64,000 bases of DNA from Pavona decussata (Eukaryota), in assembly GCA_977016875.1 (NCBI GenBank), contig CDRNST010000233.1, positions 2,108,001-2,172,000 on the forward strand, written 5' to 3'. The notes below the pieces were generated by a model, which was not told the origin of the DNA, did no database searches, and saw nothing but the letters and a program-made list of their open reading frames with translations. Shown piece by piece: positions 22,178 to 61,781 of this stretch. Made by a program: the position numbers and the translations under genes. How positions within the stretch are numbered: the first letter of the stretch is position 1; each line of letters starts with the position of its first letter.

Positions 22178-22350
22178 TTAGTTAATTTTTACTATGCTTG
22201 TAAATTTTGTGTATATTAAGTACCATTTTTCTTTATGATTCCTGATACAGAATGAAAACCATGAGTAATGCACATCATTTACCTTCCTGTTTAGGTTACG
22301 TCATCTACAGCAAGTGAGGCTCGCTGCTGATTGGTTCATTGTCTTCAGCT

Positions 22351-25300
22351 ATGCGCGTTCCCATTATCTTCCCAGTGTTAGCAGTATCCCTGTCTGTCGT
22401 TGGCTTGGTGTGTCTAATCACTGGCGTTGTTTTGCTGACACGTGCTAAACAATGTGACGAAGCAGATACGGCTACTGATCAATGTTCTTACTCTGATGAA
22501 GCCAGGCGAAGTGGTTTGGACGCGTTCTTCCAAAAAGTTCAAGACAGCTATTATCGACTGCACCCGAATAAGATCGCATACAAGCCGGGAGTTTCATCGT
22601 ATGAGATACGGCAAAAATACCGGTCTTATAACCCTTCGCCGAGTAATATCAAACTTGTGACGGATGAGGCTTGGCGCCTACTGGATGAGGTAAACAAAAC
22701 GGATTTGGAGTTACATAAACTTAAGTCCCGCGAAAAGAAAGCACTGGCCCAAATAAAACATTATTTACAGCACGTGTTTGGGGCACCCTATGATGTCAAT
22801 TACTACGCTGGTGATTTTTTGTTGGGCCCTAATCTTTGGTGTTGGCAGCCGTTGTGTGACGTACCGTATGAAATCAAAAGCAGTCTGCCTCATTTCAAGC
22901 CAAACAACACAAAAGACTTGGACAACTTGAAAAATAAGCTTACTGAGGTTAAAGAGACGTTCATTCAGTACCAGAAAAACATGGAGTATGGTGTGAAAGT
23001 TGGAATGGTTCGCTCCACAGAACAGTGTACAGCAGGGATAAACGGACTGACTTCTTTTTTCCGAATGATATCGAGTAAAGGGGCTCACGGTAAGGACTAG
23101 TGTTGAGGTTGTCACACGTACCTTTCAAGGGTGTTTTGGTGTCAGTTGGAGGTCAGTTTGAAAGTGTCTACAAAAGGTCAGGTTTGGTTTTTCGCTTGAA
23201 TAACCTTTAGTGGTCGGATTTACATGGAATTGGAGCTTTGCCCTCAAAATAAATAAAAACTTTTAGTATAATCTCGTATCGTATAACCGGGCTTGAGTTT
23301 ACTGACTAATCCGAAAGACTGTGTACTTGGTCGAATTGGAATTTGGAAATGTTGGTTTTTGTGGACCAAAGACGAGAACCATCAACAAACTCACGTTCGT
23401 AAGAGGCGGTTGCTCTCTTCTCTGTTCCACCCCCTACTGACCGAAAACGGGTGTACTCTTGCGGATTGGCCTCCAGGCATTACACGGTATTAAACGAGCA
23501 ACTAATTTAAAAAAATCTTTGAAAAAGTTTTGTCAAATATTTTTGCCATCACCTTCCTAGTAGCTTTTCAGTTATAGTACAAACACATTTTGTTAAGGAA
23601 GACGAGACATATATAAGAAGTAGGGTGAGTTCTAGAAATGTTGTTTTACCACACTTTTCTGGAAAATTAAAACAGCTTAAAAGATTATAACATAGGCCAT
23701 TTCCGAGTTGCTTTAAGCCTCATTATGAAAGTGCGGCTTCGTGCATAGTTTTAATGATAAAAATTACTTTTCATTTTTATGTAAACATCACGAATTTTCG
23801 CATATAAAGCCGGCTTTCGTAATTGGATTCAGAGCAAGTCTGAAAAAAGCAACACCATCTTTGATCACATCATAGGCCCTCAGCAGCGCTTTAAAGGTCT
23901 TAAGAACCCACAATATTACCCGAATGTACTCTATTTACTCTAATTTCACTTTACCATTGTTTTCCTCAAGGAATCTTCGAGGAGAGTTTTGTCCAACGCC
24001 TTCTCCAGCCAGAATTTATTGAGACACTTACGAACAATACAGAAGAAAACAATTCGTGGGAAAGCAAACATCGAAAGTCTGTGAATGAATCTTTGAGAGA
24101 GTTTATTGTCGACAATATAGGGAAACCTATAGACGACCTCTTTACGTAAGTAAATTCTGGCGCTGACGGTTATCAGCGTTGGGAACAAAAACTAGCTTTA
24201 AGGGCAAGTAATACGGGCAACATTTTCTTGCAACTTGCCCTCTCAACAAATGTTGCGTTGCAAGTTGCGATTGTTTGCTACCCCGATTACCCCCCTCGTG
24301 CGCAAGAAATGTTCAGGTGACCGAAAATTTGTTGCGCGCGGAGGGCCCGCAAACGAAAATGCTGCAAGTATACGCAGGATCTGTAAAAGATCTAATCAAC
24401 CAAAAATATAAGCAAAAAGTAGAACAACCAACGCGAGTGCCTGGATTTGAGCCCATCCGAAATCACTACCACGTGCATTTGGTAGACCACTCGACTTGCG
24501 TTGGTTGTTCTACTTTTTTCTGTGCTTCACCGTGCTGACGAGAGCCAACAAGCTCGAAACAGCTGTCTGCGGTTGCCGCATTCTCTCGATTCTCGATTTG
24601 GTCTCTATCATTTCGCTGTCGTGTTAAGGTTTCAACGCAGACCGATGAGCCTTGCACAAATTTGAGTCAGTAATATAAAGGACGGTGCCTCCTTTTCGCT
24701 ACTGTGCATACGTTCTGCACCTCTCGGGGGAAGGACGGAAGGGCAGCAGAACAAGCTAAGATAATTTTGCGCGGTAAACGTCTATGCGGATCTTACTAAG
24801 TTCTTAGATCTTTTTAATGGTTATTGAAATCCAAAAAGAAAATTAGGGGTAGTACCACGCATTTTTAGATAATTAAGATTCAATTGGAACGAAATGCCAT
24901 ACACTGTTGTGTATTTTTAGAACCTGAGTGGCTACTCCCAATAGATTTGCTTTCCCGCATAGCCATTACATGCGGAAAAATACCTTTGCATTAGAAGGGA
25001 AGCTGCTATAGAATGTAGAGGAATGCAAGTGACGCATGTGTAGGCCAAGGAGGACCAAGAATGGTAGTCAGTGGTCAAGCGTCCAATCGTCGAGTCCATA
25101 GAAATCAGTTTGGATCATTGTCTGAATGTTGGTCCAGTATGCTCAGGAATCACCTCTTCTTATGCATTTCTGTGATTTTCCGTGGAAACACTATTTTCAT
25201 TGTCTTTTACTTTGTGCTGTGCAGACCAATATTCAAAACGATAGAAAAGAGTTGTAAAACTACTGCTTTGGGAACTTGACTCAACGGATAGTTCCCCAGT

Positions 25301-39084: not shown

Positions 39085-39292
39085 GGAGGAGCACAGTTGG
39101 CGCAGTGAGAGAACGCTTTGATTCCAGGACTCGGCGTCATATATGGGTTTAATTTGTTGTTGGTTCTCGTTCTTGCTCCGAGGGTTTTTTTCCGGGTACT
39201 TCGGTTTCCACTTCTCCCTTCTCAAAAACCATTTCTTCCAAATTTCAATTCGATCTGGAGAGTGTCTCCTAGTAGAGCTCTGTGCTAAATGC
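39085..39292 (+). mobile_element. tRNA-derived SINE-like fragment
   Basis: Degenerate A/B boxes (tggcgcagtg, gattcc) followed by gttggttctcg...tttttccgggtacttcggtttcc...ccaaatttcaattcgatctgga body. An inverted fragment lies at ~23325-23395. Confidence 0.5.
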
Positions 39293-39481
39293 AATCAATA
39301 ATAAAGCGAATGTTAACTGAATTCAGTGTATCGGTCAATGATTTCTTGCGAAAGGTTAGCATCCTTAACAAATTCAAAGAAAATTAAAATAATTATAATT
39401 TATTTAAAAATAAATCAATTGTTAAAGTGCAAGATGTGTAAAGAGCAGCAAGGCGGTGTATATTTCTTTGAGAGAATAGCA

Positions 39482-39971
39482 GTGCCGGGAAACGGCACTG
39501 AAGAATTGTAACTCCAACCTGTTGCTAACATTCATTTCAAGTTCTTTCTCTGAAAATTAAACTAACAGGAACGAATTTTCTATTAAAAAACGAGAGCGTA
39601 CTGAAAGCGCTGTTTATTGTGATATTATTATTACATCAGGAGCATTTAGGAAGGAAGAAGATAGTTTGGTTCAACTCACTGGCCTCAAACAAAAAAGCTG
39701 AATAACAAAGTACTTCACTTTTTGTTCCGTTTCAGTGCCAAAACAAGTACATACGCCTCACACAGTCTAAAATAAACTCAACATTAAATTAATATAGATG
39801 TAACTTTTAGCAAGTGAGTAAAGATCTAGGCTAACAATAATGGACTAATTCTGTATATTCTGCAATATTTTTCAAGCATTTTCCGACGGTTTTGGGTGTT
39901 TGTGTTATAGACGTCATTGCGGTTTACCTCTGTGATATTTTTTCCGCGTTGTAAAAACTCTTTGTCACGAC
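39482..39971 (+). repeat. Direct repeat of the PLC upstream region (second copy 43010-43631)
   Basis: Collinear blocks caacctgttgctaacattcattt, gtgccaaaacaagtacatacgcctcaca, agacgtcattgcggtt...gttgtaaaaactct. Confidence 0.8.
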
Positions 39972-40419
39972 CTCTAAATCTGTAGTCTGCCGGGGGCTAT
40001 GTAATTCTACGTAGCAAGAAAGAGATCAGTCTTTTGACAGCTTATTAACGTAAGCAAAGCATCAGGAATGCTTTGCTAGGTTTCCGCGATTATTTTATAT
40101 AGTGACAACTAAAATAAGCTCATTTTCAAACTCATCTAGTAGTAAGTTATGCAATAGTTTGGTTCTCACAGCATAATTTTTATGTTTGGTTTAGTTGTAA
40201 TTTTTGCCTTAATTTTTCATATGTAAAGTGTCAGTTTTTGAGCTTGTCTGGTGTTCATCGTGAAGCATCCCTAGCCTGGTACTGCGCTGTTTCTAGCTGA
40301 TAAAAACTGACAAAGGAAATTGTTGTTGATCTGAACCTGGTAATGCACACTAATATAGCTAATAGTGCTCTGAAATTGGTTTATTTTAAGGCGATTTTTT
40401 ATACCGAACGATTTTTTAA

Positions 40420-41131
40420 GTTTTTCGAAATTGATTTAACTATAAAAGTTAACGTTAAAAGAGAACGACGTTTCGACCGTCCGACGGTCATTTTCAAGTT
40501 CAAAATGAGAAGTAAAATATGTGCTTATATACAATTGTGAAAAAACTAATGAGATACTGACTTAAAAAGTTCTAAGATATTCACATCTAAACAATATAAA
40601 AAATAATAGCGTGAATGATAAATACAAAGGCACGCTAAAAAACGATGTTGGCTTCACGAGTCGACACTTACATCAACGTGTGGAGGAACACAAACGATCA
40701 GCAATTGGCAATCATGTAAAGGACGAGCATGGACAGGATCCAGAGACCATTAAAAGCAACTTCAAAATCCTGAGAAAGTGTCAAAGCAAACTCGACTGCT
40801 TGATCTTCGACATATTGTTTATTCGCGACCTAAAGCCGAAACTGAACAAACAATGCGACTCGATCCGCGCGAAGTTATTTGTTTAATTATTTCACTTTTA
40901 AATACCTTTTAAATACCTTTTATCGTTTTTTAGCGTTCCTTTGTATTTATCATTCACGCTATTATTTTTTATATTGTTTAGATGTGAATATCTTAGAGCT
41001 TTTTAAGTCACTATCTCATTAGTTTTTTCACAACTGTATATAAGCACATATTTTACTTCTCATTTTGAACTTGAAAATGACCGTCGGACGGTGGAAACGT
41101 CGTTCTCTTTTAACGTCAACTTTTATAGTTA
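40420..41131 (+). mobile_element. 5'-truncated Penelope-like retroelement (GIY-YIG endonuclease C-terminus between inverted pseudo-LTRs)
   Basis: ORF remnant 40647-40886 VGFTSRHLHQRVEEH...IGNH...FKIL..LIFDILFIRDLKPKLNKQ. Inverted repeats 40437-40646 / 40922-41131, a 17-nt tail, and a 14-bp TSD gaacgattttttaa (40406-40419, 41132-41145). Confidence 0.9.
40463..40501 (-). ncRNA. Minimal hammerhead ribozyme motif with U3-A8 core variant (second copy + strand 41067-41105)
   Basis: gaac-UUGAAAA-u-gaccgu(cgg)acgguc-GAAA-cg-UC/guuc. The + copy has C->G at 41093, breaking the stem II closing pair. Confidence 0.65.
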
Positions 41132-41336
41132 GAACGATTTTTTAAACGTATAATTAAGTCAGTATTATCCGTGTTGCGGTAAAACATTCCAAGTATTTTT
41201 GTCTTCAAAAAACATGCAACGCGTTGCCGCAACAAAAGATTGCGCTAAAGGTTGTCTTCGTGCTATGTAACATTAAAAGTCGCTGTCAACTTGTAAAAGT
41301 GTTCTTTCTGCTGTCATAAATGCCAAGCACACATGT

Positions 41337-42634
41337 TTATGAAGAGTGTTCTACGTTTTCTCTGACCTCAGCTCCCGGAGGGGGGGGGGGGGGGTACTCC
41401 CTTTTATGGGCTATATAGGTATGTGCGGCGCCAAAGGGTATGGTTTTTCGGCTGTTTTGGTCATAAATAGGGTATCGCTTTTAGCCATTTTGCCGCCATT
41501 TTGGTAATAAATAGGGTATAAATTTTTGCACTCTAGTCCTGGGTTCGATTTTTTTTTAGAAGAAGCTACTTCAGGTCATAAATAGGGTAGTGAAAATCGC
41601 AGATTTTGGTCATAAATAGGGTAAGGGTTTTGGGAAGCGGGCCGCACACCCCTACCCAATATTTTTTGGAGTACCCCCCCCAGGCCTCAGCTAAGGCATC
41701 ACCTAGTTCCTTATGAGTAGCTTGCAACTGAAGATTTCGGATAATGGTAGAAAATGACACCGCTTTGCCGCGAAGCTTTCCATCAACTTCCTCTCCATAA
41801 AAGTGAAGAAAGTGTACAGCCTCATCTACGTCCACCTCACCAGTGTCATGATTAAAGATGTAGAAGAAGATTGGAGCACCAAAGGAACCTTTACAAGTAG
41901 CAATGGAGTGTTCAGCAAAGGGCTCTTTCACCACCAAGCATCCCAGTGTCATTTTGACCATACACCATATTCAGAAAGTAAACATGGGTGAGATTTGACT
42001 CCATTCCTCCAAACGACACTTGTTTACTTGCTCGATGTGGATGAGAGATAGCGAAAAGCCTCAGGGAACGCGAAAAAAGTGGAACTCCTTGGATCAGGAA
42101 ATCCGAAAGAGGAAACATTACGAAAGTTTTCTAATATGATGAAGGCTTTCATCTCCAAGGGCTCTACTTTTGCAAACTGAGTTTTCTGTTCGTCGTTTTC
42201 CAGCGGCTTCAAGTACAATAACGCATAATCCAAGAAGGCGTCTCTACGATCAAAGTACGAAGAAAGCAATCCCAGGGCGACATTACATTTGTCGATATCC
42301 GGTGTATCTTTTGTACCGTCTCCGAATAAATTTCCTTTCAGAGAACCCAGTAAGACATTTTTGCCTTTGTTCTTGTCTGGCGGTGAAGCACTTTCGATTT
42401 TAGCCACCTCGCGAGCTACTTGCACTAGTTGCACTACTTGGGTACTAGTATGGTTGCTCTTTTTATTCTTGCTTCTGGCTGTGAGGTTTATTCATCACTG
42501 TTTTCATGTTGTTGTTTAAGCTTATATCTCGGCGGTAACAAGTTTTCAATAAAATTCGCTGGTAAAATGTTCAAACCTACTAGCTCGTCTATTTCATCAA
42601 TGGTAGGTGCTTTATGGACTGTAAATTTTTGCAT
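41337..42634 (-). pseudogene. Intronless trypsin-like (Trypsin_2/FAM111-like) serine peptidase pseudogene
   Basis: Across ~3 frameshifts: AREVAKIE, LDYALLYL, ISHPHRASKQVSFG, HSIATCKGSFGAPIF, FLH. The catalytic GxSG is altered to GSFG, no His motif was found, and the 3' end is interrupted by the MITE at 41374-41684. Confidence 0.6.
41374..41684. mobile_element. CCCGG(G)n-GTACTCC MITE with 8-bp TSD
   Basis: TSD cctcagct (41366-41373, 41685-41692); termini ggggtactcc / ggagtacccc; internal repeat ttttggtcataaatagggta. Confidence 0.85.
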
Positions 42635-42811
42635 TTTCTTTGTTTTGACGTAAAAATTAAAGCCAAAAATTCAAATAACCCTCCCCGAGAAAAAATTTCG
42701 CGCACGGATTTTACCATGGCTACACTGAAGTAAGAATTTCTCTTTCAATCAGCGTACGATTTGTACTTTATCCGTTTACTCTCTCCAACAAAATGTCAGT
42801 ATCGCGATAAA

Positions 42812-42990
42812 AAACTAAATTCGATTTTGAGACGGCAATACGACTTTATATTGACGGCGTTGGGAGAAAATATATTCCGTATTGGGCTTCGTCGCTTCGC
42901 GACTCCGCCAAATACGGAATCTGTATATATTTTCTCCCAACTAGCCGTCAATATAAAGTCGTTTTGTCGTCTCAAAATCGAATTTAGTTT
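42812..42990. repeat. Foldback/palindromic element (~75-bp arms)
   Basis: aaactaaattcgattttgagacg...ccgtatt / aatacgg...cgtctcaaaatcgaatttagttt. Confidence 0.8.
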
Positions 42991-43063
42991 ATAATCTGAT
43001 GATGTGCAAGTGCCAGGAAACGGCATCGAAATGTTGCCGATCAACCTGTTGCTAACATTCATT

Positions 43064-43129
43064 TAGCCTGAGTATCAGGTTGGGAGAAAATATATTCCGT
43101 ATTGGGCGGAAGGCCTGATACTCAGGCTA
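43064..43129. mobile_element. 66-bp TIR mini-element with a locally copied interior
   Basis: 16-bp perfect TIR tagcctgagtatcagg / cctgatactcaggcta with duplicated flank taacattcattt. The empty site is present in the paralogous repeat at ~39520-39545. Confidence 0.75.
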
Positions 43130-43983
43130 ACATTCATTTCACGTTCTTTCTCTGCTAACTACAGAAACGAAAAAAAAAAAAAAATAAAAAACCAAAAACA
43201 ACAACAACAACAAAAAAAAGAACAAAAAACAAAACAAAACAAACAAGCAAACAAACAAAAATAAAACAACAAACAAGCAAGAGCGTATTGAAAGTGCTGT
43301 TTATTGTGCTGTAAACCGGCGACTAGCATATTGACTTTAAAATTATTAAACGGAGAGCATTTAGGAACTGGGAAAAACAAAGTTTGATTCAGCTCACTGA
43401 GCTCAAACAAAAAGGAAAAAAACAAAGTGCTTCACTTCAAGCTGTTCCGTGTCGGTGCCAAAACAAGTACATACGCCTCACAAAGCCTAAAATATAGATG
43501 TAACTTGAGTAAAGATCAAGGTCAACAATAATGGACAAATTCTGCGTATTCTGCAACATTAGACATGCTAGACGTCATTGCGGTTACCCCCGTGATATTT
43601 TTTCCTCGTTGTAAAAACTCTTGGTCACGACGGGAAATGGCAAAAAATTACCATGTTATGTGTAAGCGTTTTATGAATTATAGGCTTCATTTTACATAAT
43701 GAATGCAAAGAAACAAATGAGTGTTACCAGTGGTCTTTAAAAAGAAAAAAACTTGACAGGAAGGAAGAACATAGCTGAAATTGCTGAATGTTGTGGAATA
43801 TTTAAACTATCGGAGTGTGGCAAACGGGATTAATTGATGGCACGTAGGTAAATAAACAGTTGATTGATTAATTGGCTTTTTGCCTAGAAGGAAGAACAAA
43901 GCTGAAATTGCGGAATTTTAGCGAATATTCTCAGTATCGGGGTGTTGCAATCATTGATCGCTTCTAATCTATTCCTTTGCAAC

Positions 43984-46717
43984 ATGGCGGCACTACCGAC
44001 AAACTTTGGCCATATTCAAATGAAATTTGCCTCATTTGAACACAAACACATTGGGAAGTTTATCCGCCTGGAGATAAAAGAACTTACGCTTCCAAATGGT
44101 GTGTTGATTGAGTTTGAGGACATTATAGCTCTTGCTGGAGATTATTACGGTTTACCAAAACAACCAATTATTAATCCTTTGATCGTCGAAGAGGAGGATC
44201 CTGGCCGCGACCAGCGCTTCGCAGAAGCATTCGACACTCTGGCACGCGCCCCAAAGGATGAGCTACAGAGTGAGTTGGACAAGCTGTTAGAGACTCTAAA
44301 GAAAGAAACTGAACAACGTAAAAGTTTTGCCTCCAAAACATGGGACAAAATCACAGGTGGTATATGGGCTGGTCCTTTACCTTTGAAACATGGGAGGATG
44401 TTACAGCTAGCTGAGAATAATCACGATCATTTCCAACCTTATGCAAAGTATTCGTACCTTACTGGTCACCAGCTGGCGATAGACAAGGCACGAGAAGCTG
44501 GAAACTGTGGCGGGGACGAAGAGGAGAGGCTCCTTCATGAAGCACTTGCGATGGATGCGTTTGCCTGCCACTTTCTTACTGACGGTTTCGCGAGTGGACA
44601 CATCAGGTAATTACAAATCGAATGTGGTTTAGCGTTGTGTGCACATCTACAACGATATTCGTCATCACAGTGGTCGAACAAAGTCGTCCATGTTTGAGGG
44701 CGGAAAAAGGCATTGCGTGACAAGTTGACGCGAGCAGCATTGTCTAGACTCTTATCGACAACGGAAAATTAGCCAATTAGATTGCGAGATTAGAAACAGT
44801 TGTGGTAAAAATTATGTTAGCATAGTCATTCACTGTGTTTTTTTTATTTGTGTTTCTCGTTCCTTGACGATTTCATTTAAATAACTATGATAATTTAAAG
44901 ATACCGTAATTGAATGATTAGATGCTTTTTAGTGGTGGATGAGTCCACCACGGCCCGAAGAGCATTGTCTTTCACAAGCGTTTTCGGGACGAATAATTGG
45001 GTGGTCTTATTTACAGTTTTACCGACCGTGTCAGCCGGCTTTTTTCCAGCTAAAATGATTTAACAAGCGGTGAGGTATGTAGGTGCCCAGTGATTTTTCT
45101 CTATTTTTCCTTGATTGTTGTCGTCTTCTTCGCAAGCCTGTTCAATATGGTGGCTTTCCTTCACGTGCAACGATCAATGCCAGTACGCGTTTGCTTTTTG
45201 ACCTATAGCGGCCAATATCGTCTGGGTTCAAAGTGAAGAAATGACACCATCTTTTTTATGCAGTTACTCTTGGATTTTAAGGCATCGCACTCCATCGCAC
45301 CTCTCATCGTTTTTCTGCTATGTGTGATTTAAGTTTGGCGATTGTGAGAAACCAACTTGAGCGAGTCACGATTAATTATGACCTTTTTCCTTTTCCTTGT
45401 TTTGTCTCTAAGTTTACGGTTGCAGCTAAAACGGTGGCTACAACCAGCTGTTCTAAATGGCTTCCTATTTCACGTCAGGAAAAAAAATGTTGGGGATTCA
45501 ATGCCATGAGCCGTCGTTAGATATAACCTAAACTATCAGTCAGTCGACAAACAAACGGTAACTGGAGAAAAGTAATTGAACAAAGGGCCGAATATACCGA
45601 TTTTATGCCTTTTTGAAGTTAAAATTTTTCATTCCTTGAGATCCACACAGCGCGAAGGTTTGTTACAACTGAGCTGGAAACGACAACTCGCCCCAGCATG
45701 CGTTGTGGACCGTGTCCAACCAACCATTCCAAATTTGACATTTCTTTTGAAATTTAAAATGAAGTGGTTTAGTTTCAAAAGTTGAGATTCAAATAAACAT
45801 CCTAATCCTCTCGTTTGGAACGATTATGTAGCAATGTACTAATAACGTTTAAGTCAGTTTGCGCAACAATAAAGGGTGCCTTGTAATTCCATATAATTGT
45901 GGGGCTCGCACTATGGTAAAGGCAATGCTCGATTTGATTGACTGAGAATGAAAAGTAGGCAAGGAAATAGCCTGAATTGGACGCTGAACTGGGTAATAGG
46001 AGTGTACGGCTCTTTTAGTAGAAATTAGCTCCATACATTATTGGATAAAAAACAGACAAATAAACAATCAATTGTCCCATTAGAATGATTTGAGTTCAAA
46101 TCTTCAACATATACCCTTATGACATGTGATCGCATGTTTCATTTCGTATATCCATCGAAGTGCACTCTGTTGAGCTATTAGCTCTGATTAACATTAATAC
46201 TTATTTAACTGGCATTTATATGTCAGGTCATGTTATGAAATAAAATATATTTCCTTGCAGGACGCCACGAGTGCAGTTGGGAAGAGGAACTACCTTTGGC
46301 AAAGATGGCCATTTACTATGTTTGTGCATGCACGACGAAGACAACAAGTATGGCCTGCGTGTTACAAACAAACGGGGAGACAAGTGGATTGCATATGGCG
46401 ATGGAACGCTCCTAAATGAAGAGAGCAAAGATAACCTAAACATTGCAGTAGAGGCTGTTCAGACATCAGTTGATCAAGTGTATGAGGCTTACAGACAACC
46501 CGAGAAAACTATTTACCCTACTGCAGTGACCGATTTGATGCCATTTGTTGACCCAGATGAGAGAAACAACTCCCCCTTGTTCCAAGTGAAAGATGACAAA
46601 ATGCACAGGAGGTCAGACATCAGTGATCTTCAGGATGCAGAAACGGTTACCAATTGGTGGGGACCAACAACGCTCTCCATGCTACAGGTTTACAAACCAA
46701 AAAATTCGGCTATATAG
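43984..46717 (+). CDS. Zinc metallo-phospholipase C-like protein (Legionella PlcA/B/C - Pseudomonas/fungal PC-PLC type), 359 aa, 2 exons
   Basis: Exons 43984-44606 and 46261-46717 (phase 2, 1080 nt). Motifs FASFEHKHIG, IIALAGDYYG, LAENNHDHF, FACHFLTDGFASGHIRTPR, MHDEDNKYGLRVTNKRGDKWIAYGDG. No signal peptide. Confidence 0.85.
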
Positions 46718-49141
46718 ACTTGACTTGTGCTGAGCAGAAACTGTGTGATCCGTTTGATTTGTGTGATCTGTAAGTTTTAGGAACAAGTTGCTGGAATGTT
46801 TGTTACTTGTTCAGGCTATATCTGTTTATTATTTTCTCCTCTGTAATTTATATTAAAGAATAATGCAGTTGTGAAACAAAACATCGAGCAAAACAAAACA
46901 AAAACATCGCTGAAATGTTGTCAATGCCGATACCAGTAGGACAGATGACTTGGTTATCTGTTCAAAGTTTTTTTTCACTAGTACTTGTTCTCGTGGAGTA
47001 GTAACGTGTTATTTGTGTGATCTGCGAGTTTGGCAGCTAGCTACTGGAATGTTTGTCCCAATTTCTATATCTTCTAATAATTTTTGCCTCATTAACACAG
47101 ACACAGGTCTTACTTATAGCAAGGATCTGACAAACATAAAACAGAAATCGATAAACTCGTCAAGGGCCCGCTGGCACTATCAGGACAGAGAACTGATTGC
47201 ACTTCAGAGCCGGTCAATCTTGTGTATGCGATCAACTAAGTCATAGTATTAATTTAACAGACCGCTGGAGAAATGCAATCAAACCTTTACTGAACTTTTT
47301 CCATTCAGGGAATTTATTCGAGACAAATAAGACTTTAAAGAAAGTGTGTGCTCGGTATGCGCATAGCTGGTGCAATTACCAATGTTTTGCGCGCTGGTCA
47401 GGCTACTCATGCATTCGTCGTGGTCAAGTCGATCTTTATATGTCTCTATTTTCTTAGTATTAGATTTTCTTTTTCTTTTTTGGTGAAGTTTTATACAAGG
47501 CCGGTACATAGATAGTCTCATTTTATTGCTTACTGGAAAAGTGTGTTTGGTTTTTTATAATCATTAAAGTTTTAGGAGTGCTAAGTACGTGTCTTATTTG
47601 TTTTGGTTGCTGGACCTGACTGTATGTACATAGCATTCTTTTCTTTTCATGGAATAAGATCAGAGAACATCGCACCTGCCAAAAATAGGATAGCGCAGTT
47701 AAAGAAAAATAATTTCACAACTGTTAAAGCAAACTTAAAATAAATCTGACTTGCCTATTGTCACAAATGCAGGTGACGGAAAAGCTTGGAAGTCACAGAC
47801 GGGAACGTTTTCAAACAAGGTAACCAAAGCCAGCGAAAAAAAACTAAATATCGTCGGCTTACGCATTTTTTACCAAAGAAAACATTTCACATCCCGCTTA
47901 AAATGTCACATTTCAAACATTTCGTGATGCAGACGTTGTTTTCGAATGTTATATCCAATATAAAGTCAATTAAACGTCGATAACATTTTGCTTGATGGCC
48001 AACGTGAACAGTCTCCATGAGCCAATAGCTGGCCTATGAAAACTACTCTCCAAAGGCCACATGCTGTCATCAATAAAGTTATCATCACTTCATTGAAAAT
48101 TTCTCTACAGGAAGTCAATTTGTTATGCCTGTCTTTTTCTTGTCATGGAAATTTATAGTCTCGATAACACTGAAAATTTTAATAATTTTGTTCCAATTGT
48201 AGGAGATGTCGAAACAAAACATATAAACAAGAAAAGCTAATTATAATGATCAAACTTTTGCACATGAATGTACACCGTTTATGAAACTTCAAGCGCGGCC
48301 ACCGTTGTCATATATGAAAACTTCAAACATGTTTTCTTATTAATTTTAAAAAAAAAACGCAACGTGAGAAAAAACGGCAAATAGAATCTATTTTTGATGC
48401 TTTTGATTTTATTATACCTTTTTGTAAAAATTAAGGGAAATTGCGAATACATAGACATGATTCTTTAGCGTCACCCTAAGAGTCGACTAAGTGGTAGCAT
48501 GTTGATCAAACATTCATTCTAGATCATTCATGCGCAGCTGCCAATGAATTTTAGCGGAATCACATTTATCGGTCTCACACCGTTACATCATTTCGGTTAT
48601 CTATTATTTTCAGCCCAGTACTACCCTTGGAGGCAGTGATCGTGCCCAGGCATAACTTACTATTGAGTTCAAATTCTCAGGAATGACATTTCTTTTCATT
48701 CCCTTCCATTCCGTGTGATTTTGGTTTTAGCCGATTTATAGGTTTCTGTTGGGAAAGTGACGTCACAATCTCGCCGACACAATTTTAACGTCATTCCCAG
48801 GGTCCTCTCTCTTCCTCCCTCCCACATTTTAGACCCCTGGAAATGGGATCAAGTCAATGTTACTAAAAAGTGACCTTCTGGTAGTGCAAGCCACAATTGT
48901 ACATGTTTGGGATAAAGCAATCTCGTACCCCTTTTTGGTCAGCGGGTGGTCGCCACTAAAGACTCTGGAGAACTCGAAAAAATTTAAATGTTTTGATTGG
49001 CTGCCCCGTTACAGTTTGCATTGTTTTACCGCAGAAATCCTGCAGTAATAAAATTGCAGTTCCCCAGAGTCTCTCCTGGCAACAAACCGCTAGCCAAAGA
49101 GCCTGAGGACTCTGGGAACGAGATTGGGGATAAAGCCGTCC

Positions 49142-51900
49142 AGATGGTTGGTGCATAATATCCAGAGGATCGGTCTTTTGAAGCAAAACATGTCAGACCA
49201 AAAGCAGGAGAAATACAAGTTTACTTGAAACGATATTTGTAAATCCATCTGGGAACAAAAAATGACCATCAATAGGAATCAGCAAATTTTTTAAAATTAC
49301 CAGTGAAGTACAATAGCATGCAAGCGCTTGGTACTAAGAAACGCTGAACTCACGTAGTACGTACTTAGAAACTGTTTTACGATGCGTTTTGATTGGGTCT
49401 TTTGGAACCGGTGTTATCCAAATTAAAAACTTTGTTGATAACGTAATGTTGCATGAACTAGCATATGATTATTAAAGAATTAGGTTTGGACACTCTGTTC
49501 CCTTGATCTTTTACATGAATTATTAAGGTACGGAAAGGAGGGGAAGTAAGATTATTGCCCAAGCAAATCCTCCGACTGTCTTTCTTCACACCATTATATG
49601 ATTTTTAACAATAACCTAAAATTAATGAATGCACTTGTACCCAAATGGTGTTAAACATCTAGTGGTTTCAAACCTAACGTGTTGTAGCCACGAGAGGTCG
49701 TCCATGATTTTACATTTTATGGGGTTCGAGCGCTCTATCTGGGGAATTGCATTCGTCGGCGATCGATGTGGCGTTGGAAGGGGGAAGTGAATGATCTAGC
49801 TATAATACAGGAACGTTATAGTCCTGTTTGGTCCATTCCCGTTCGCGAGCGGCCAAGAACCAGACATATTATGTGTTAAAATAACAGAGAGACCCTCACA
49901 GTTCTTTGGAAAACTTAAGCAGTTGCGAAAGGATACTGGAAAAAGTCAGGCTTGAACGGGATTTGACCCTTTCATGCCCTTATTTTCGCAAATAACTGCG
50001 AAGAACTACCTTTCCTTTTATATAAAATTGGATCCTCAGTTCCAATACATTATTCATATTCATTTGCTCTTCTTTCACGGGTATATCACGAACTCAGAAT
50101 GGGACCAGCTCCCAGTTGGTTTGCAATCGATAGCTCAGTTGGTAGTAATGGGAGACATCCATATCTCCATTCGCAGATTTGGTACTCAATTTTCCTTTTT
50201 CTTAATGCCTTAAGATTACTCTTACTTAATATCAGCTGAGAAATCAAATTCAGTTACAAAGGAACAACCAAAGCGAATAGCCCTGTAGTACCGTTCCCGC
50301 ACGAGATGCATGGAGCGACTTTTTTCTTGCTTCTTTTTATTAAATATTGATCGTTTGTATTGTGTACATTCCTCTAAGACTCACAATTTACTACTACAAT
50401 TCCGCCTGAGAAAAAAAGTGTAAATATTAATAATAAAAACAAAATAAAAATAACAAAACGACCATTGTACGTTTATGTAGCAATTTACATATTATATTCT
50501 GATCTAAACTAATCTAAATAGTACGCAGCCATTGTCCTAAACTAGAAGCACTCTTCAAAGAGCTGTTTAATGTGTTATAAATTTTAAGATGTGCTATCTA
50601 AAGGTAGAACCTCTATGTATAACAGCAGGGAGTTTCGTTTCCGTTGTTGCTGTTCAGTGTTGTTTGCCTGTTTGTTTGCTTTTAATACATTGGTGGACAC
50701 AATGAATTGATTTTTTATGATTCCCTCGACATAATTATTAAAAACTAATAGCACCAATAAACACTTTATTTAATTGGCTAGGTCAATTTACCCATCTTCC
50801 CGGGACCTAAACGAACATTGCCCCCTTCTCTAACACCAGAACAGATTAGGAAGATCCAGGATCCTGGAACGGTTATAGTCCCTGCACTCAGTGCTGCAGT
50901 TAAAAAAAAGCCGACAAAAAGCAACCAATAAATAGACACAATCGCAGTTCCGACAAGAACCGGAGAGTGTTTTTGTGGTTAAATTAAACCTCGCTGGACC
51001 GTGCGCTAAAAAATAATCGCTTTCAAAATCATTTGCTTTAGACTTCAAAAAGTCAAGTCAAACGCAGTCTCCAAATGTTGATGACTTTGTTACTTGACGA
51101 ACAACATGCCATCAAGGTTGCGATATATCCCAAGGCTGTCATCTGCCGGTTTCTGAGGACAAGGATAACCATATAAGGCACGTCTGCCGGTCCCTGTTTC
51201 GGAATCAACAAAGAGAACCGTATAATCAACATTTATCTTTTTTTTTTACTTCAATGATTAATGAACTATATAGGCATGTATGATGGTGTTAGATAACTTT
51301 GTATCGTGCTGAGTGACTAGGAATAAAAGTAATCATCTATTGGAACACGCCGTTTTTCAGGAGGCTAATGTATTTAGCTGAGGGAATTGGCCCTAAGTAA
51401 ATTGTTTTCTCAACTTGTGTGCTTTTCAGATTGTTCGTTAAATATATAATTTTGATTTATTAATTTAAAACGAATTCTCTGACTCACAGTCAGAAAAGGA
51501 AATCATATCTTTTCATTATTACTGATTTAGTGAACCGGCCACACTTTTATTTGGCTTACTCAAGCTTGATGAAAACCACATAGATCCACACTGACCATCA
51601 TCGTGTCCATCAAAAACTAAAATCAAGAAGGAGAAAAGAACGATATCAAAGAACAGTGGTTGAACGGGCACTAAACATAACTTAGTGTTAGTAAATAGTA
51701 AAACAGTCTTGGAGCGGGTAACAATGTAGTTAAAAACCCTCAATGTTTAAATCAACATTTTGTTATCTATGAAGCTTCGCCTATCAGCGAAGGCATAACA
51801 TGAAAACGAAAACAGAAGCGCCAAGGACGCTTTCCCTAAATAAAAAACTTTTAATTCTTGGTCACGTTCTCTTGCGTTCGGCTGCTTAGTGTTGGTGGAG
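49142..51900. repeat. Segmental duplication, matched by 58411-64000 (continues past the window end)
   Basis: Collinear high-identity match from agatggttggtgca to gcttagtgtt..gtggag. The second copy has extra insertions (58503-58984, ~60825-61605, 61979-63328). Confidence 0.9.
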
Positions 51901-54219
51901 CAGTGAACAGTTGGCGTGATGGTCCAGTCCAGTTTTCAAACAATTCTGATTAATTCTTACTAAAATGTGGTGGTAGGAGGTGAGAGAAAATTTTAATTGA
52001 GGAAAGAAAGTGAGTCGTTCGAGAAAATGACAGACATCAATTAACGATTAAGGTCCGTTATTTATTACCTCTGTAGCAATCCGTGGTGCCAATACTGTAT
52101 CCCTCATGAATGCTTGTACAGTTGCTAGTTTCCCAGTGATACGGATAGGAGCTGGAAATGATGATCCGCGGACAACTGAATACAAGAATGGAAACGATTA
52201 AATAAAATGAAACAAGTGAATGAATGAGTGAATGAAATGAGTGAATGCAGGTACTCACTTTGCACTACTGCACGAGGAGTCGAAATTTTGTGGACCACTT
52301 GGAATCTGGAATTGAAAGCCTGATTAGCCTTTTTAACAGCTTTTAACCGTCCGAAACAAAATATATTTTATGCCATAGAGAATACAGCCAATCAAAAAGC
52401 GAGAAACCGTTGCATATTCTGTGGTATGTAACGGGCAGTATTCCACTAAACATCCCGGCGTTCCTCGCGGCCTACAAACTTTTTCCCGCCGAAAGATCGA
52501 TTGAAGGGTCTGCGACAGGTCAAAATTTTCATTCAGATAAAATTACTGTCAACAACTAAAACATTTTTCACGATGTACCACTCGAAAAAGTTGCATAACT
52601 AGTATTTCTTACAACAAAAAAGTTTCATTTGACATACCTGGTAGAACATAGAGTAGTTCATTTTCACCACATCGACTCGGAAAGTTCCTAGTAAGATATT
52701 AAACGGTGGTTTTTCTATTAAACAAGGGATCCTAAATAAAAGCTGGGTCTGAAATATTATTGCGTGCATTAAACAAGAATTATTTCAACAACCTCGTCTT
52801 GAAATAAGCTTTAATACAGCAGCGTATCTAAATTGTTTGATTAATTTTCCAGGTGTATCGGAGATGAACATGACACAAGTAATAGAGCAAAATTCTCGCA
52901 GACAAATGTTGCAGTAAATGAGGCATAGTAATATGCTTTATTTTATAAGACGAAACGTTGAATTACTGAAATTATATTTTTAGCATTGAATCCATGAATT
53001 AGGCTTTGCTTAATTAATCTGATTGTCCTACCTTCAGCCAGTGCCAGTTTATGTATGTCCTCGTCACTTAACTTCCGAGCTTTGATGACTGACTCATGAG
53101 CAGGAACACAGAGCACTGAGTTGAGGCAGTTGTTTGAATTTCTTTGAAGATGATTGTTGTTTTTTGAGCTTATGCTCACCACCAAGGTCCATCCCCCACC
53201 TGAATATTTCAATAAAATTAAATCACTTTAGTTGGTTTTACATCGCTATGAACACCAATTCCCATCGGACACTGAACAACTACAATGGTAAAGCTCTACT
53301 TATAGCAACAAAAACGAAGATGATGATAATGATGATGAAGATGGCGATCGCAATGGTGATGACCTTGGTGGAGGTGGTGATCGATGACAACGACGACAAC
53401 AATAACAGTGATGATGATGATGATGATTGTAGTGTTGATGCTGACAAATTAATTTTAATATAACGCATGGAGTGAATTTCTTCTTTTAACTCTCTGAATT
53501 TTCTTGTATCTGTATACCTACCATGATTGTCCATATCGCAATAAACTTGTGCATCCCTGTTCCCAATCTTTAACCAGTAATAGCCACTATGAGCTTGTGG
53601 GAATGCCTGGCTTATTTCCGCGCATGATTTAAATCCATGTTTCTATGTGATAAATACAAATGTCATTAAATATAATATAATTATCGATGTAATGTTCGTT
53701 ACATTGCAGAAGGCTCAATAATTGAAATTTTTTGGGTCCTATTGGGTCGGTTCCTTTTTGTTTGGTATTAAATTTAATTCCCTTCTCAAATCAGACCTAC
53801 TAATCACATCTAACTTTCATTGTCCCGACTGCGGTGCAAACTGATTTTAGGGAGATGATTTTGTTGCTGTTTGCAAAGTCAAAGCAGGTGGCACGACTGA
53901 CCTTTCTGTGCTTTACAGACGTGTCCATGTAAACAAATCCATGCTTCGGCCCATAATCCTGAGGGTGGGTAAATCTGTCAGCATCGTTTAAGTCACATGA
54001 ATTGTCATTCAGCCTGAAGTTCAAACTCTTACATCGCGACTCGTCTGCACACATCATTACGCAGTCTGCAAGACGGGAGCAGACCCTCGTGTAAATCACA
54101 TGGTTAGCCAAGCGATGGCCGTACACTGAGAGTGATTGCACTTGACACTGTTCGAAGGCGTGAAGCAGCTTTGCAGAGTTAATGATGATGAGAATACCAA
54201 CAAAATACTGCAGCAGCAT
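51090..54219 (-). CDS. Secreted PAN/apple-domain + fibrinogen-related (intelectin-like) protein, 323 aa, 8 exons
   Basis: Exons 54219-53902, 53642-53522, 53199-53032, 52687-52638, 52305-52259, 52175-52069, 51616-51560, 51193-51090 (phases 0,1,1,0,2,1,1; 972 nt). Signal peptide, PAN motif CVMMCADESRCKSLNF..CDLN, fibrinogen N-motifs SCAEI..SGYYW..VYCDM..GGGWTLV, C-terminal GMLFVK. Confidence 0.85.
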
Positions 54220-54508
54220 GGTATCAATTTTCCTGGAAGAAACGTTCATTTGCAATTTGTTCTGTGCTTTTATGTGTGATTTTAAAAGTTAAACAGGAGG
54301 TAGTTAATACAACAACAGGCAAAAACTGAAAACGCTTTTGGAAACGACTGGAAACTGAACACATAAAAACAAAGCACAGTAACGATTCGATTACGCATCC
54401 TCCTTCCAACACGCTCGATCACACTTGTCTGTCCGTCTAATAGTCTCCTTCCACGTGAGCACCCCTATTGGGTAAAAGTCCCAGTTTCGATAATTGACCC
54501 CTATTGGA

Positions 54509-58984: not shown

Positions 58985-61781
58985 TATTTGTAAATCCATC
59001 TGGGGACAAAAATGACCATCATTAGGAATCATCAATATTTAAATTACCACTGAAGTACAATAGCATGCAAGCGGTTTGTACTAAGAAACGATGAACTCAC
59101 GTAGTACGTACTTAGAGACTGTTTTACGATGCGTTTTGATTGGGTCTTTTGCAACCAGGTGTTATCCAAATTAGAAACTTTGTTCATAACATATATGTTA
59201 CACGAACTAGCATATGACTATTAAAGAATTAGATTTGGACACTCTGTTCCCCTTTATCTTTTACATGCATTATTAAGGGTACGGAAAGAAGGAGAAGTTA
59301 GAGCATTGCCCAAGCAAATCCTCGGACTGTCTTTCTTCACAGCATTATATAATTTTTAACAATTACCTTAATGAATGCGCTTGAACCCAAATGGTGTTAA
59401 ACATCTAGTGGCTTCAAACCTAAGGTGTTGTAGCCACGAGAGGTCATCTATGATTTGTATTTCATGGGGTTCGAGCGCTTTATCTGGGGAATTGCGTTCA
59501 TCGGCGATCGATATGGCAGTGGAAGGGGGAAATAAATGATATAGCTATAATATAGGAACGTTATATTCTTGTTTGGTCCATTCCCGTTCGCGAGCGGCCA
59601 AGAGCCAGACATATTATGTGTTAAAATAACATAGAGACCCTCAAAGTTCTTTGGAAAACTTAAGCAGTTGCGAAAAGATACTGGAAAAATTCAGGCTTGA
59701 ACAGGATTTGACGCTTTCATGCCCTTATTTTCGCAAACAACTCGGAACTTACTTTCCTTTTATATAAAATTGGATCCTCAGTTCCAATACATTATTCATA
59801 TTCATTTGCTCTTTATTCGACGGGTCATGATATCACGAACTCAGAATGGGACCAGCTCCCAGTTGGTTTGCAATTGATAGCTCAGTTGGTAGTAATAGGA
59901 GACATCCATATCTCTATTCGCAGATTTGGTATTCAATTTTCCTTTTTCTTAATGCCTTAAGATTACTCTTATTTAATATCAGCTGAGAAATCAAATTCAG
60001 TTACAAAGGAACAACCAAAGCGAATCGCCCAAATTGCGCAATTGTGTTAAACCTTCGAAAAATGTATTGTCCTGTAGTACCGTTCCCGCACGAGATGCAT
60101 GAGCGACTTTGTTTCTTGCTTTTTTTATTGAATATTGATCGTTTGTATTGTGTACATTCCTTTAAGACTCACAATCTACTACTACAATTCCGCCTGAGAA
60201 AAAAGAGTATAATAATAAAAACAAAATAAAAATAACATAACGACTATTTTAAGTTTATGCAGCAAATCCGTTGGGGAAAATTTGTATTGTGTACATTCCT
60301 CTTAGACTCACAATCTACTACTACAATCCCGCCTGAGAAAAGAAATTATAATAATAAAAACAAAATAAAAATAACGTAACGACTATTTTACGTTTATGTA
60401 GCAATTTACATATTATATTCTAATCTAAACTAATCTAAATAACACGCAGCGATTGTCCTAAACTAGAAGCACTCTTCAAAAAGCTGTTTAATGTGTTATA
60501 AATTTTCAGATGTGCTATCTAAAGCTAGACCCTCTATGTATAACACCTTATTAAGTTATATTAGTTTCATATTTACAGGTAGGAAGTTTCGTTTCCGTTG
60601 TTGCTGTTCGAGTGTTGTTTGCCTGTTTGTTTGCTTTTAATACATTGGTGGACACAATGAATTGATTTTTTTTATGATTCCCTCGACAAAATTATTAAAA
60701 ATAATAATACCAATAAACACTTTATTTAATTGGCTAGGTCAATTTTCCCATCATCCCGGGACCTAAACGAATATTGCCCCCTCCTCTAATACAAGAACAG
60801 ATTAGGAAGACCCAGGATCCTGGATANNNNNNNNNNNNNNNNNNNNNNNNNNNNNNNNNNNNNNNNNNNNNNNNNNNNNNNNNNNNNNNNNNNNNNNNNN
60901 NNNNNNNNNNNNNNNNNNNNNNNNNNNNNNNNNNNNNNNNNNNNNNNNNNNNNNNNNNNNNNNNNNNNNNNNNNNNNNNNNNNNNNNNNNNNNNNNNNNN
61001 NNNNNNNNNACAGCAGTAGCAGTAGTAGTAGGAGTAGTAGCAGTAGTAGTAGTAGTAGTAGTAGCAGTACGTAGCAGTATAGTAGAGCAACAACAGCAGC
61101 AGCAGCGGTAGCAGCAGTAGTGGTAGTTACTATAGTATAATAAACCGCCCTTTGTATAAACCGGCCCATGAATTGTCAGGAGCTTAGAGTTTCGTAAGCT
61201 GTTGTCAAAGTAATCAATTTTGAAACAAAAAATCTTCCCAATAATATGCAGTGTCCTAAAACAAACCTTTTCCAAAAATAGGCGCCTCATGGAGTCACCT
61301 TAGGCCCCTCATCGAGTCCTTTCAACAAATATAAACCAAACTCAAGGGATTTAACGGACAATGGAGGTCTTGGAAGTTAAGTTAAAAGGATATCTTTGAG
61401 CTCTCAATAAATGGTCCATGCAATTCAATTTGATCTACAGGTGACGCAATTTTGACCAAACTTTGCACATTTGAAAATACAAGGACCTCTCTACACTTGA
61501 AGATTTGATTAGACCCTTGCCGTTTTCGTATCTTTGGTGCGATACACATCCCGAAAACGCCGGGAAATTACCATGAGCTCAACGTTCCCAGGTCGTACCT
61601 TTCAGTAACGGTTGTAGTGCCTGCACTCAGTGCTGCGGTTAATAAAAAGCCGAAAAAAAGCAATCAATAAATAGAAACCATCCTCGCTGGACCGTGCGCT
61701 AAAAATAATCTCGTTCAAAATCATTTGCTCTATACTTCAAAAAGTCAAGTCAAACGCAGTGTCCAAATGTTGATGACTTTG

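Follow-up and report, generated by a model that had tools for sequence, protein, structure and literature searches.

The window that we analysed, a 64,000-nt stretch of contig CDRNST010000233.1 of the stony coral Pavona decussata, very probably holds a functional nuclear coral gene for a 359-aa protein of the zinc metallophospholipase C family, which lacks a signal peptide and belongs to an old animal clade rather than being a recent import. The locus is confirmed as an intact coral gene with two exons that encodes a protein of the zinc phospholipase C (PLC) type. All coordinates given here are positions in the window on the forward strand. As read from the sequence and its translation, exon 1 (43984–44606) opens with the ATG, comprises 207 full codons and ends with the AG of a split Arg codon (...CAT ATC AG). 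The phase 2 intron (44607–46260, 1654 nt) is of the GT-AG type, with its GT at 44607–44608 and its AG at 46259–46260 behind a pyrimidine-rich tract, and exon 2 (46261–46717) provides the last base of the Arg codon, 151 codons and a TAG stop at 46715–46717. The coding length is 623 + 457 = 1080 nt, which makes 359 codons and the stop. The split codon AG/G (the slash marks the intron) specifies the Arg of the motif GHIR/TPR. The original prediction had described exactly this two-exon open reading frame (ORF), with its GT-AG intron inside GHIR/TPR, and the sequence agrees with it. It had also quoted four motifs and noted the lack of a signal peptide; ALAGDYYG, NHDHF, FACHFLTDGFASGH and HDEDN are all found in the window protein, which has no hydrophobic N-terminus and no signal-peptide-like or transmembrane-like hydrophobic stretch (Kyte-Doolittle, 19-residue maximum 1.17). 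Downstream, a candidate polyadenylation signal ATTAAA lies at 46852–46857 on the + strand, 135 nt past the stop codon, as a pattern match only, and an Rfam scan of positions 38000–52000 gave no match.

Homology searches were made with each exon separately (43984–44604 and 46262–46714). An exhaustive phmmer search with exon 1 retrieved 748 relatives. With BLASTP, both exons matched a 423-aa phospholipase C-type protein of Legionella pneumophila (L026; E 2e-25 for exon 1 and 4e-25 for exon 2) and a 383-aa protein of Pseudomonas fluorescens (E 1e-32 and 1e-30, respectively). Where exon 1 ends and exon 2 begins, the alignments fall on neighbouring residues of the bacterial proteins, namely 244 and 246 in L. 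pneumophila and 228 and 230 in P. fluorescens; because the exon matches are collinear and adjacent in both, the splice junction is fixed independently. The pairing of the two exons cannot be one of chance ORFs either, since they adjoin in the bacterial homologues and an orthologous transcript described below (L097) runs ungapped across the junction. When 185,579 species genomes of bacteria and archaea were scanned with the family profile, at least 460 encoding loci were found, which include those of L. pneumophila, L. shakespearei, Coxiellaceae, many Pseudomonas (P. fluorescens among them) and Myxococcota. Likewise, structure-predicted ESM Atlas neighbours of the Pocillopora orthologue P0158 are labelled 'Dot/Icm T4SS effector family protein' and 'phospholipase'. 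On this homology, the window protein is a member of the family of the P. fluorescens phosphatidylcholine PLC (PC-PLC) and the L. pneumophila PlcA, PlcB and PlcC, the assignment that had been made from the motifs and that the exon-wise matches and the invariant residues bear out. Aurass and colleagues reportedly named this family in 2013 as a zinc metallophospholipase C family of bacteria and fungi. In L. pneumophila, PlcA and PlcB are type II secreted, and PlcC (CegC1) is a Dot/Icm effector. PlcC is a Zn2+ metallophospholipase C that hydrolyses phosphatidylcholine, phosphatidylglycerol and phosphatidylinositol (review PMC7025538, citing Aurass 2013).

We then examined the residues that the family shares. 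In a 102-sequence alignment, the invariant columns are, in Pocillopora numbering, D63, D156, H157, H205, D209, H215, R217, H241, E243, D264 and R334, with H24 and H170 nearly invariant. The window protein carries the family residue at all of them, and its split codon gives the invariant Arg. In its own numbering, D53, D148, H149, H196, D200 and H206 of exon 1 and H24, E26 and D47 of exon 2 (exon-2 numbering) fall in columns invariant in 102 of 102 members, and H20 and H162 in columns conserved in 98 of 102. Exon 1 (43984–44606, +) thereby displays E19-H20, D53, D148-H149, H162 and H196-x3-D200-x5-H206, and exon 2 (46261–46717, +) H24-D-E26-D (HDED), W42, D47 and R117. The codons of the H-x3-D-x5-H element (CHFLTDGFASGH), whose three residues are invariant in the 102 members, occupy 44569–44601 on the + strand; its spacing is equal to that of H118, D122 and H128, which we take to be zinc ligands of the Bacillus cereus PC-PLC. 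The HDED codons occupy 46331–46342 (+), and their invariant His and Glu presumably correspond to the last two zinc ligands.

The AlphaFold2 model of P0158 scored a mean predicted local distance difference test (pLDDT) of 88.7 and a predicted template modelling score (pTM) of 0.88. When it was aligned exhaustively to 48,161 representative chains, the top six matches were all zinc PLCs or P1/S1 nucleases (Z 8.8–6.4): the Clostridium absonum alpha-toxin (Z 8.8), the Listeria PC-PLC (8.2), the B. cereus PC-PLC (8.2) and three P1/S1-type nucleases (7.3–6.4). A second structural pass gave 13 zinc-PLC entries with Z 8.1–9.4 and a root mean square deviation of ~3.0 Å over ~150 residues spanning the whole catalytic domain; here the next unrelated fold reached Z 5.4. 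Based on these scores, the H-x3-D-x5-H spacing and sub-threshold matches to the Pfam family PF00882, the family is predicted to be a remote branch of the trinuclear-zinc PLC and P1-S1 nuclease fold, to which the B. cereus PC-PLC and the clostridial alpha-toxin belong.

Next, we looked for the gene in other animals. Annotated orthologues are present in Pocillopora damicornis (XP_027056029.1), Dendronephthya gigantea (XP_028403488.1 and paralogues) and Bolinopsis microptera (LOC134814301), and further ones in Montipora foliosa, Oculina patagonica and Paramuricea clavata. Those of Pocillopora meandrina and Porites lobata are labelled 'Phospholipase C/D domain-containing protein', and the NCBI orthologues are recorded as uncharacterised proteins. 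Identity to exon 1 is 49% for Dendronephthya and 57% for Pocillopora, with a maximum of 68% for a transcript contig (P0180) of the Joint Genome Institute (JGI). The orthologues share with the window gene the family, the architecture, the site and phase of the intron and a single clade. The intron interrupts the same codon in the same phase in P. damicornis (junction CG/GT...AG/G), in the octocoral Dendronephthya gigantea (AG/GT...AG/A) and in the ctenophore Bolinopsis microptera (ATC AG/GT...AG/G), whose gene was found by a profile search with anthozoan sequences (E 3.8e-97); the coral contig L003 shows the same site and phase. Moreover, many ORF fragments on large eukaryotic contigs end exactly at GH[IVM]R, some of them coral-like and others 52–88% identical to Bolinopsis. 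The anthozoan and Bolinopsis proteins also have in common a C-terminal ...Y-x-P-x-N-S... ending. The genes differ in other respects. In the window species the gene is present as two near-identical copies separated by 54 kb, and its intron is much longer and contains a repeat. At least six paralogues and four additional introns occur in octocorals, and Bolinopsis has a ~75-aa N-terminal extension and two other introns. In L101 2868–17948, on the 16.3-Mb chromosome CM047406.1, the Bolinopsis gene lies antisense within the span of a large gene of the HERC-like type (HECT/RCC1/SPRY), and a Kringle-domain gene adjoins it.

Orthologues are also seen as spliced transcripts. In Pocillopora, two RNA-derived contigs, each from a different public run, code for the protein, and their gap relative to the P. 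damicornis genome is exactly the intron. The JGI transcript contig L097, 68% identical in exon 1, aligns ungapped to window positions 44036–44607 and 46259–46716. As a separate observation, the 5' 147 nt of one Pocillopora transcript (L096 1–147) match the genome ~3 kb upstream in reversed orientation, inside a neighbouring gene (L005 899–753), which is a chimeric assembly or an unusual 5' exon.

The phylogeny of these sequences was consistent with the intron. Within Scleractinia, the window exons fall together with Montipora and Porites, and Octocorallia is the sister group (support 98). A single clade unites all anthozoans with Bolinopsis and with two Tara Oceans sequences that lack the intron (ultrafast bootstrap 96, Shimodaira-Hasegawa-like approximate likelihood ratio test 84; FastTree 0.93). 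Its next sister is a single sequence, followed by a clade with bacterial gene neighbourhoods (100/97). The fungal sequences stand in the other half of the tree, beside Pseudomonas. Forcing animals and fungi into a single clade costs 23–30 log-likelihood units. In the approximately unbiased test, a single clade of Anthozoa and fungi gave p = 0.073 (43 rows, LG+F+G4) and one of animals and fungi p = 0.010 (36 rows, LG+G4), for groups that had been named after the first tree had been seen. We thus favour separate origins of the fungal and the animal genes, without security. In a contig from the bacterial clade closest to the animal genes (ERZ25039592; L089 5001–7295), the PLC gene stands directly before a patatin-like phospholipase gene, with which it may form a lipid-attacking gene pair.

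Taken together, we read this gene as an ancient gene of animals that was retained patchily, rather than as a recent transfer, given that one intron site and phase is found in Scleractinia, Octocorallia and Ctenophora and that the animal sequences fall into a single clade. An intron-bearing animal gene existed before the two anthozoan subclasses diverged, and probably even before the cnidarian-ctenophore split. The original prediction had left the choice between horizontal acquisition and patchy retention. Within animals, patchy retention fits better, in view of the shared intron and the one clade, and the distribution is as patchy as had been supposed: the named animals with the gene are only scleractinians, octocorals and one ctenophore, besides many bacteria and some fungi. 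Regarding a transfer from bacteria to animals, the trees are unrooted and leave the direction of any transfer unset.

Several points weigh against our reading and are gathered here. Against the Pfam and NCBIfam profiles, both exons and nine full-length relatives all stayed below threshold. PF00882 (Zn_dep_PLPC) matches only below threshold, in 4 of 102 members and with a best E of 0.022, and the gene is not placed in that family, despite the 'Phospholipase C/D domain-containing' label that UniProt gives to orthologues. The modelled structure is that of the Pocillopora orthologue, which is 57% identical in exon 1, rather than that of the window protein; a Foldseek search of that model against the PDB returned nothing significant (top row, B. 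cereus PLC, E 0.2), and a Z of ~9 is within the range where helical proteins can match by chance. The fold similarity is credible mainly because the top matches make up one superfamily and the metal-ligand spacing agrees. Similarly, the PDB sequence search retrieved nothing relevant with exon 1 and no match with the 102-sequence profile. The PLC activity of the animal members is predicted from homology, and the evidence for splicing and expression comes from orthologues only. Since AG/G is a favoured proto-splice site, the intron may have been gained in parallel. Finally, the absence of the gene from other animals is suggestive, not proof, as it refers to named database matches, among which none came from sea anemones, medusozoans, sponges, placozoans or bilaterians.

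The last two points bear on an alternative view of the origin, in which the gene entered anthozoans and ctenophores independently, either from bacteria or by passage between the two groups, the intron was gained twice at AG/G, and the gene was never in the animal ancestor. We consider it possible, if doubtful. It accords with the gaps in the distribution just mentioned, with the closest outgroup being bacterial, with the long Bolinopsis branch (0.93) and with the two intron-less Tara Oceans sequences inside the animal clade; in addition, a single intron is common to the lineages, and the other two introns of Bolinopsis and the other four of Dendronephthya are not shared. Against it, we estimate that site and phase would match by chance in ~3 in 1080 cases if insertion were uniform, perhaps tenfold more often at proto-splice sites, and the animal sequences nevertheless form the one clade described above and have their C-terminal ending in common. 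Under the reading of an old animal gene, we infer that it has since been lost from most animal lineages.

Regarding the biochemical role, the zinc ions would be held by H20, D53, D148/H149, H162, H196, D200 and H206 of exon 1 and H24, E26 and D47 of exon 2. A zinc-activated water would then cut the glycerol-phosphate ester of a glycerophospholipid to yield diacylglycerol and the phosphorylated head group. This zinc-activated hydrolysis is the most likely chemistry in the light of the family, the conservation of the ligands and the fold. As the protein has no signal peptide, and none was obvious in the scleractinian or octocoral orthologues inspected, the reaction is probably intracellular. Zinc dependence, PLC activity, substrate, cellular location and loss history are all put forward here as what we infer. 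The original prediction had put forward a possible role at phagosome or symbiosome membranes or in defence. A symbiosome-specific role is unlikely, since the gene also occurs in a ctenophore and in Dendronephthya and Paramuricea, and has been expanded in octocorals. To our knowledge, Dendronephthya, Paramuricea and ctenophores have no algal symbionts. In other lineages, ESM Atlas neighbours of P0158 carry the predicted-structure domain fused to a fungal fucose-specific lectin (Basidiomycota) or to eCIS_core (PF13699; Actinomycetota), fusions which suggest its use as a delivered lipid-degrading module.

The comparison with characterised enzymes outlined both the likeness and the distance. The P. 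fluorescens PC-PLC is the best-scoring named bacterial relative (33–37% identity) and resembles the coral protein in its similar size (383 aa), in its lack of an N-terminal signal peptide and even in its C-terminal end, which aligns, but it is bacterial, intronless and placed in the other half of the trees, next to the fungal clade. The L. pneumophila PlcA, PlcB and PlcC share with the coral protein whole-length homology and all invariant His, Asp and Glu residues. In this case the identity is 31–32%, and the signal peptide of the 423-aa Legionella protein has no counterpart in the coral protein; the coral gene, for its part, has a spliceosomal intron and belongs to a separate animal clade, and its activity is predicted. 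The B. cereus PC-PLC, Listeria PlcB, the N-domain of the Clostridium alpha-toxin and the P1/S1 nucleases have a fold like that predicted for the coral orthologue, but no significant sequence similarity to it. Relative to this group the coral protein has ~110 more residues, additional helices and small beta hairpins, and lacks the processed N-terminal Trp and the C-terminal PLAT-like domain.

A second alternative, which we regard as improbable, keeps the fold and the metal site and assigns them another reaction, such as that of a P1/S1-like nuclease or nucleotidase, a sphingomyelinase or a phosphatase. The superfamily does include P1/S1 nucleases, these were also among the structural matches (Z 6.4–7.3), one Atlas row reads 'Nuclease family protein', and the animal sequences are only 31–37% identical to the assayed bacterial enzymes. 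Even so, each exon is homologous to the assayed PLC family (E 1e-25 to 1e-32) and no nuclease was found by sequence; the structural scores of the PLCs (8.1–9.4) exceed those of the nucleases, and all the family-invariant residues are kept.

Then, we compared the window gene with its second copy, which lies 54,142 bp downstream on the same contig (G000:C233:2206126–2208852). The block around the gene (39982–54212, no strand assigned) is duplicated, with the other copy ~54 kb downstream; identity is 97.7% over the 7.2 kb around the gene and 90–94% further out. The second gene copy has an intact frame, with an identical exon 1 protein and three residue differences in exon 2. A search of the genome for a third paralogue, with exon 1 and with a divergent Oculina paralogue, retrieved only the two linked copies. 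Between them, 6 of 1080 exon sites differ, as opposed to 61 of 1656 intron sites, that is 6.6-fold less in the exons (Fisher p = 3e-8). This far lower divergence indicates that the coding sequence has been under constraint since the duplication. It also speaks against a decaying or silent relic with an intact-looking ORF that is no longer used, an explanation to which we give very little weight. The relic would agree with the orthologous source of the expression evidence, with a locus inside a recently duplicated, transposon-rich block and with one L003 copy that has a retrotransposon within exon 2, but both Pavona copies preserve the full frame and every invariant residue, the orthologues are transcribed and spliced, and anthozoans have retained the family ever since Hexacorallia and Octocorallia separated. 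In that L003 contig (4.1 Mb, European Nucleotide Archive ERZ25071797; 6001–12224), exon 2 of the orthologue is broken by a 4-kb Ty3/gypsy-type retrotransposon ORF with RVT, RNase H and integrase domains, and a second gene copy (L003 3–1454) lies upstream, head-to-head on the other strand.

The surroundings speak for a gene of the host. The window is within a 7.1-Mb contig of a 602-Mb assembly, and the neighbours of the PLC gene are multi-exon DUF885 genes and a PAN-domain ORF. The intron contains a ~570-bp interspersed host repeat (44968–45539, no strand assigned; intron positions 362/384–933), which was scored at 40 places (439 first-look candidates) on many other contigs with 73–76% identity and makes up much of the extra length relative to the 187-nt Pocillopora intron. 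The exons have a GC content of 45–46% in a genome of 38%, a usual value for coding DNA here. One might think of bacterial contamination, or of a very recent insertion from bacteria that has been taken for a coral gene, with a family that is overwhelmingly bacterial by genome number and has no Pfam annotation, but this is excluded by the 7.1-Mb contig with its multi-exon neighbours and ordinary exon GC, the spliceosomal GT-AG intron holding a host repeat, the constrained second copy, the spliced orthologue transcripts, the same-intron orthologues in several anthozoans and a ctenophore, and nearest relatives that are corals at 57–68% identity as against ~31–37% for bacteria. The view that the gene is embedded among animal genes and repeats, and is hence no contaminant, held up on the contig, the neighbours, the intron repeat and the orthologues.

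The same region showed other features. Two tandem multi-exon gene copies (7862–8623, 15603–16055, 22339–23100 and 31589–32089) end in exons that encode the C-terminal part of DUF885 (Pfam E 8e-35 and 1e-37), a family titled 'bacterial protein of unknown function', and two equal-length 253-aa ORFs, 14.5 kb apart, stand upstream of these exons. The DUF885 genes are a second bacterial-looking, intron-bearing family in this coral, near the PLC gene. The PAN/apple-domain ORF (53803–54255, – strand, E 3.6e-7) is within the duplicated block. In the block alignment, which jumps from 40419 to 41132, the stretch 40419–41132 is missing from the second copy, which indicates that it was inserted, or lost from the other copy, after the duplication. 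The second copy has ~690 extra bases at the point matching window position 48330. In addition, 49140–50626 and 59043–60608 both match the same part of the downstream copy (L008) with 90–93% identity, pointing to a further internal duplication in the region.

Finally, we set these results against what had been published. The PlcA/PlcB group was already known to reach the corals Acropora, Orbicella and Stylophora (White & Cianciotto 2019, PMC6617341). The statement in the original prediction that the family is described from bacteria and fungi is thus out of date, and orthologues are also held by NCBI and UniProt. Besides that paper, our literature search found none tying this PLC family to cnidarians or ctenophores, and the coral horizontal gene transfer survey of Bhattacharya et al. 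2016 mentions no phospholipase. The ctenophore members, the intron shared by Scleractinia, Octocorallia and Ctenophora, and the reading of an old, patchily retained animal gene seem to be new. A link to the mammalian PC-PLC activity, for which no gene is well established, found no support: no vertebrate or other bilaterian relative appeared in any search, and the coral gene therefore does not explain that activity.

As a tentative scenario, about which we remain more doubtful than convinced, an intron-bearing gene for a PLC of the bacterial PC-PLC type may have been present in the ctenophore-cnidarian ancestor, close to the root of the animals, and may survive only in ctenophores and some anthozoans, where it would encode a cytosolic, zinc-dependent enzyme producing diacylglycerol from phosphatidylcholine-type lipids. 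If this is true, it would be the first gene-defined animal PC-PLC, and the 'eukaryote-like' PlcA and PlcB of Legionella would be relatives of an old animal enzyme lineage. The common intron is a clean marker for the age of the gene, which makes it a useful case in the debate on transfer versus differential loss. The family has been studied as bacterial virulence factors, and the strong sequence constraint on its animal branch points to a role of the same chemistry in housekeeping or signalling in early-branching animals, whose lipid signalling has been little explored. For coral biology, the gene offers a candidate source of diacylglycerol that does not pass through phosphatidylinositol-specific PLC (PI-PLC).

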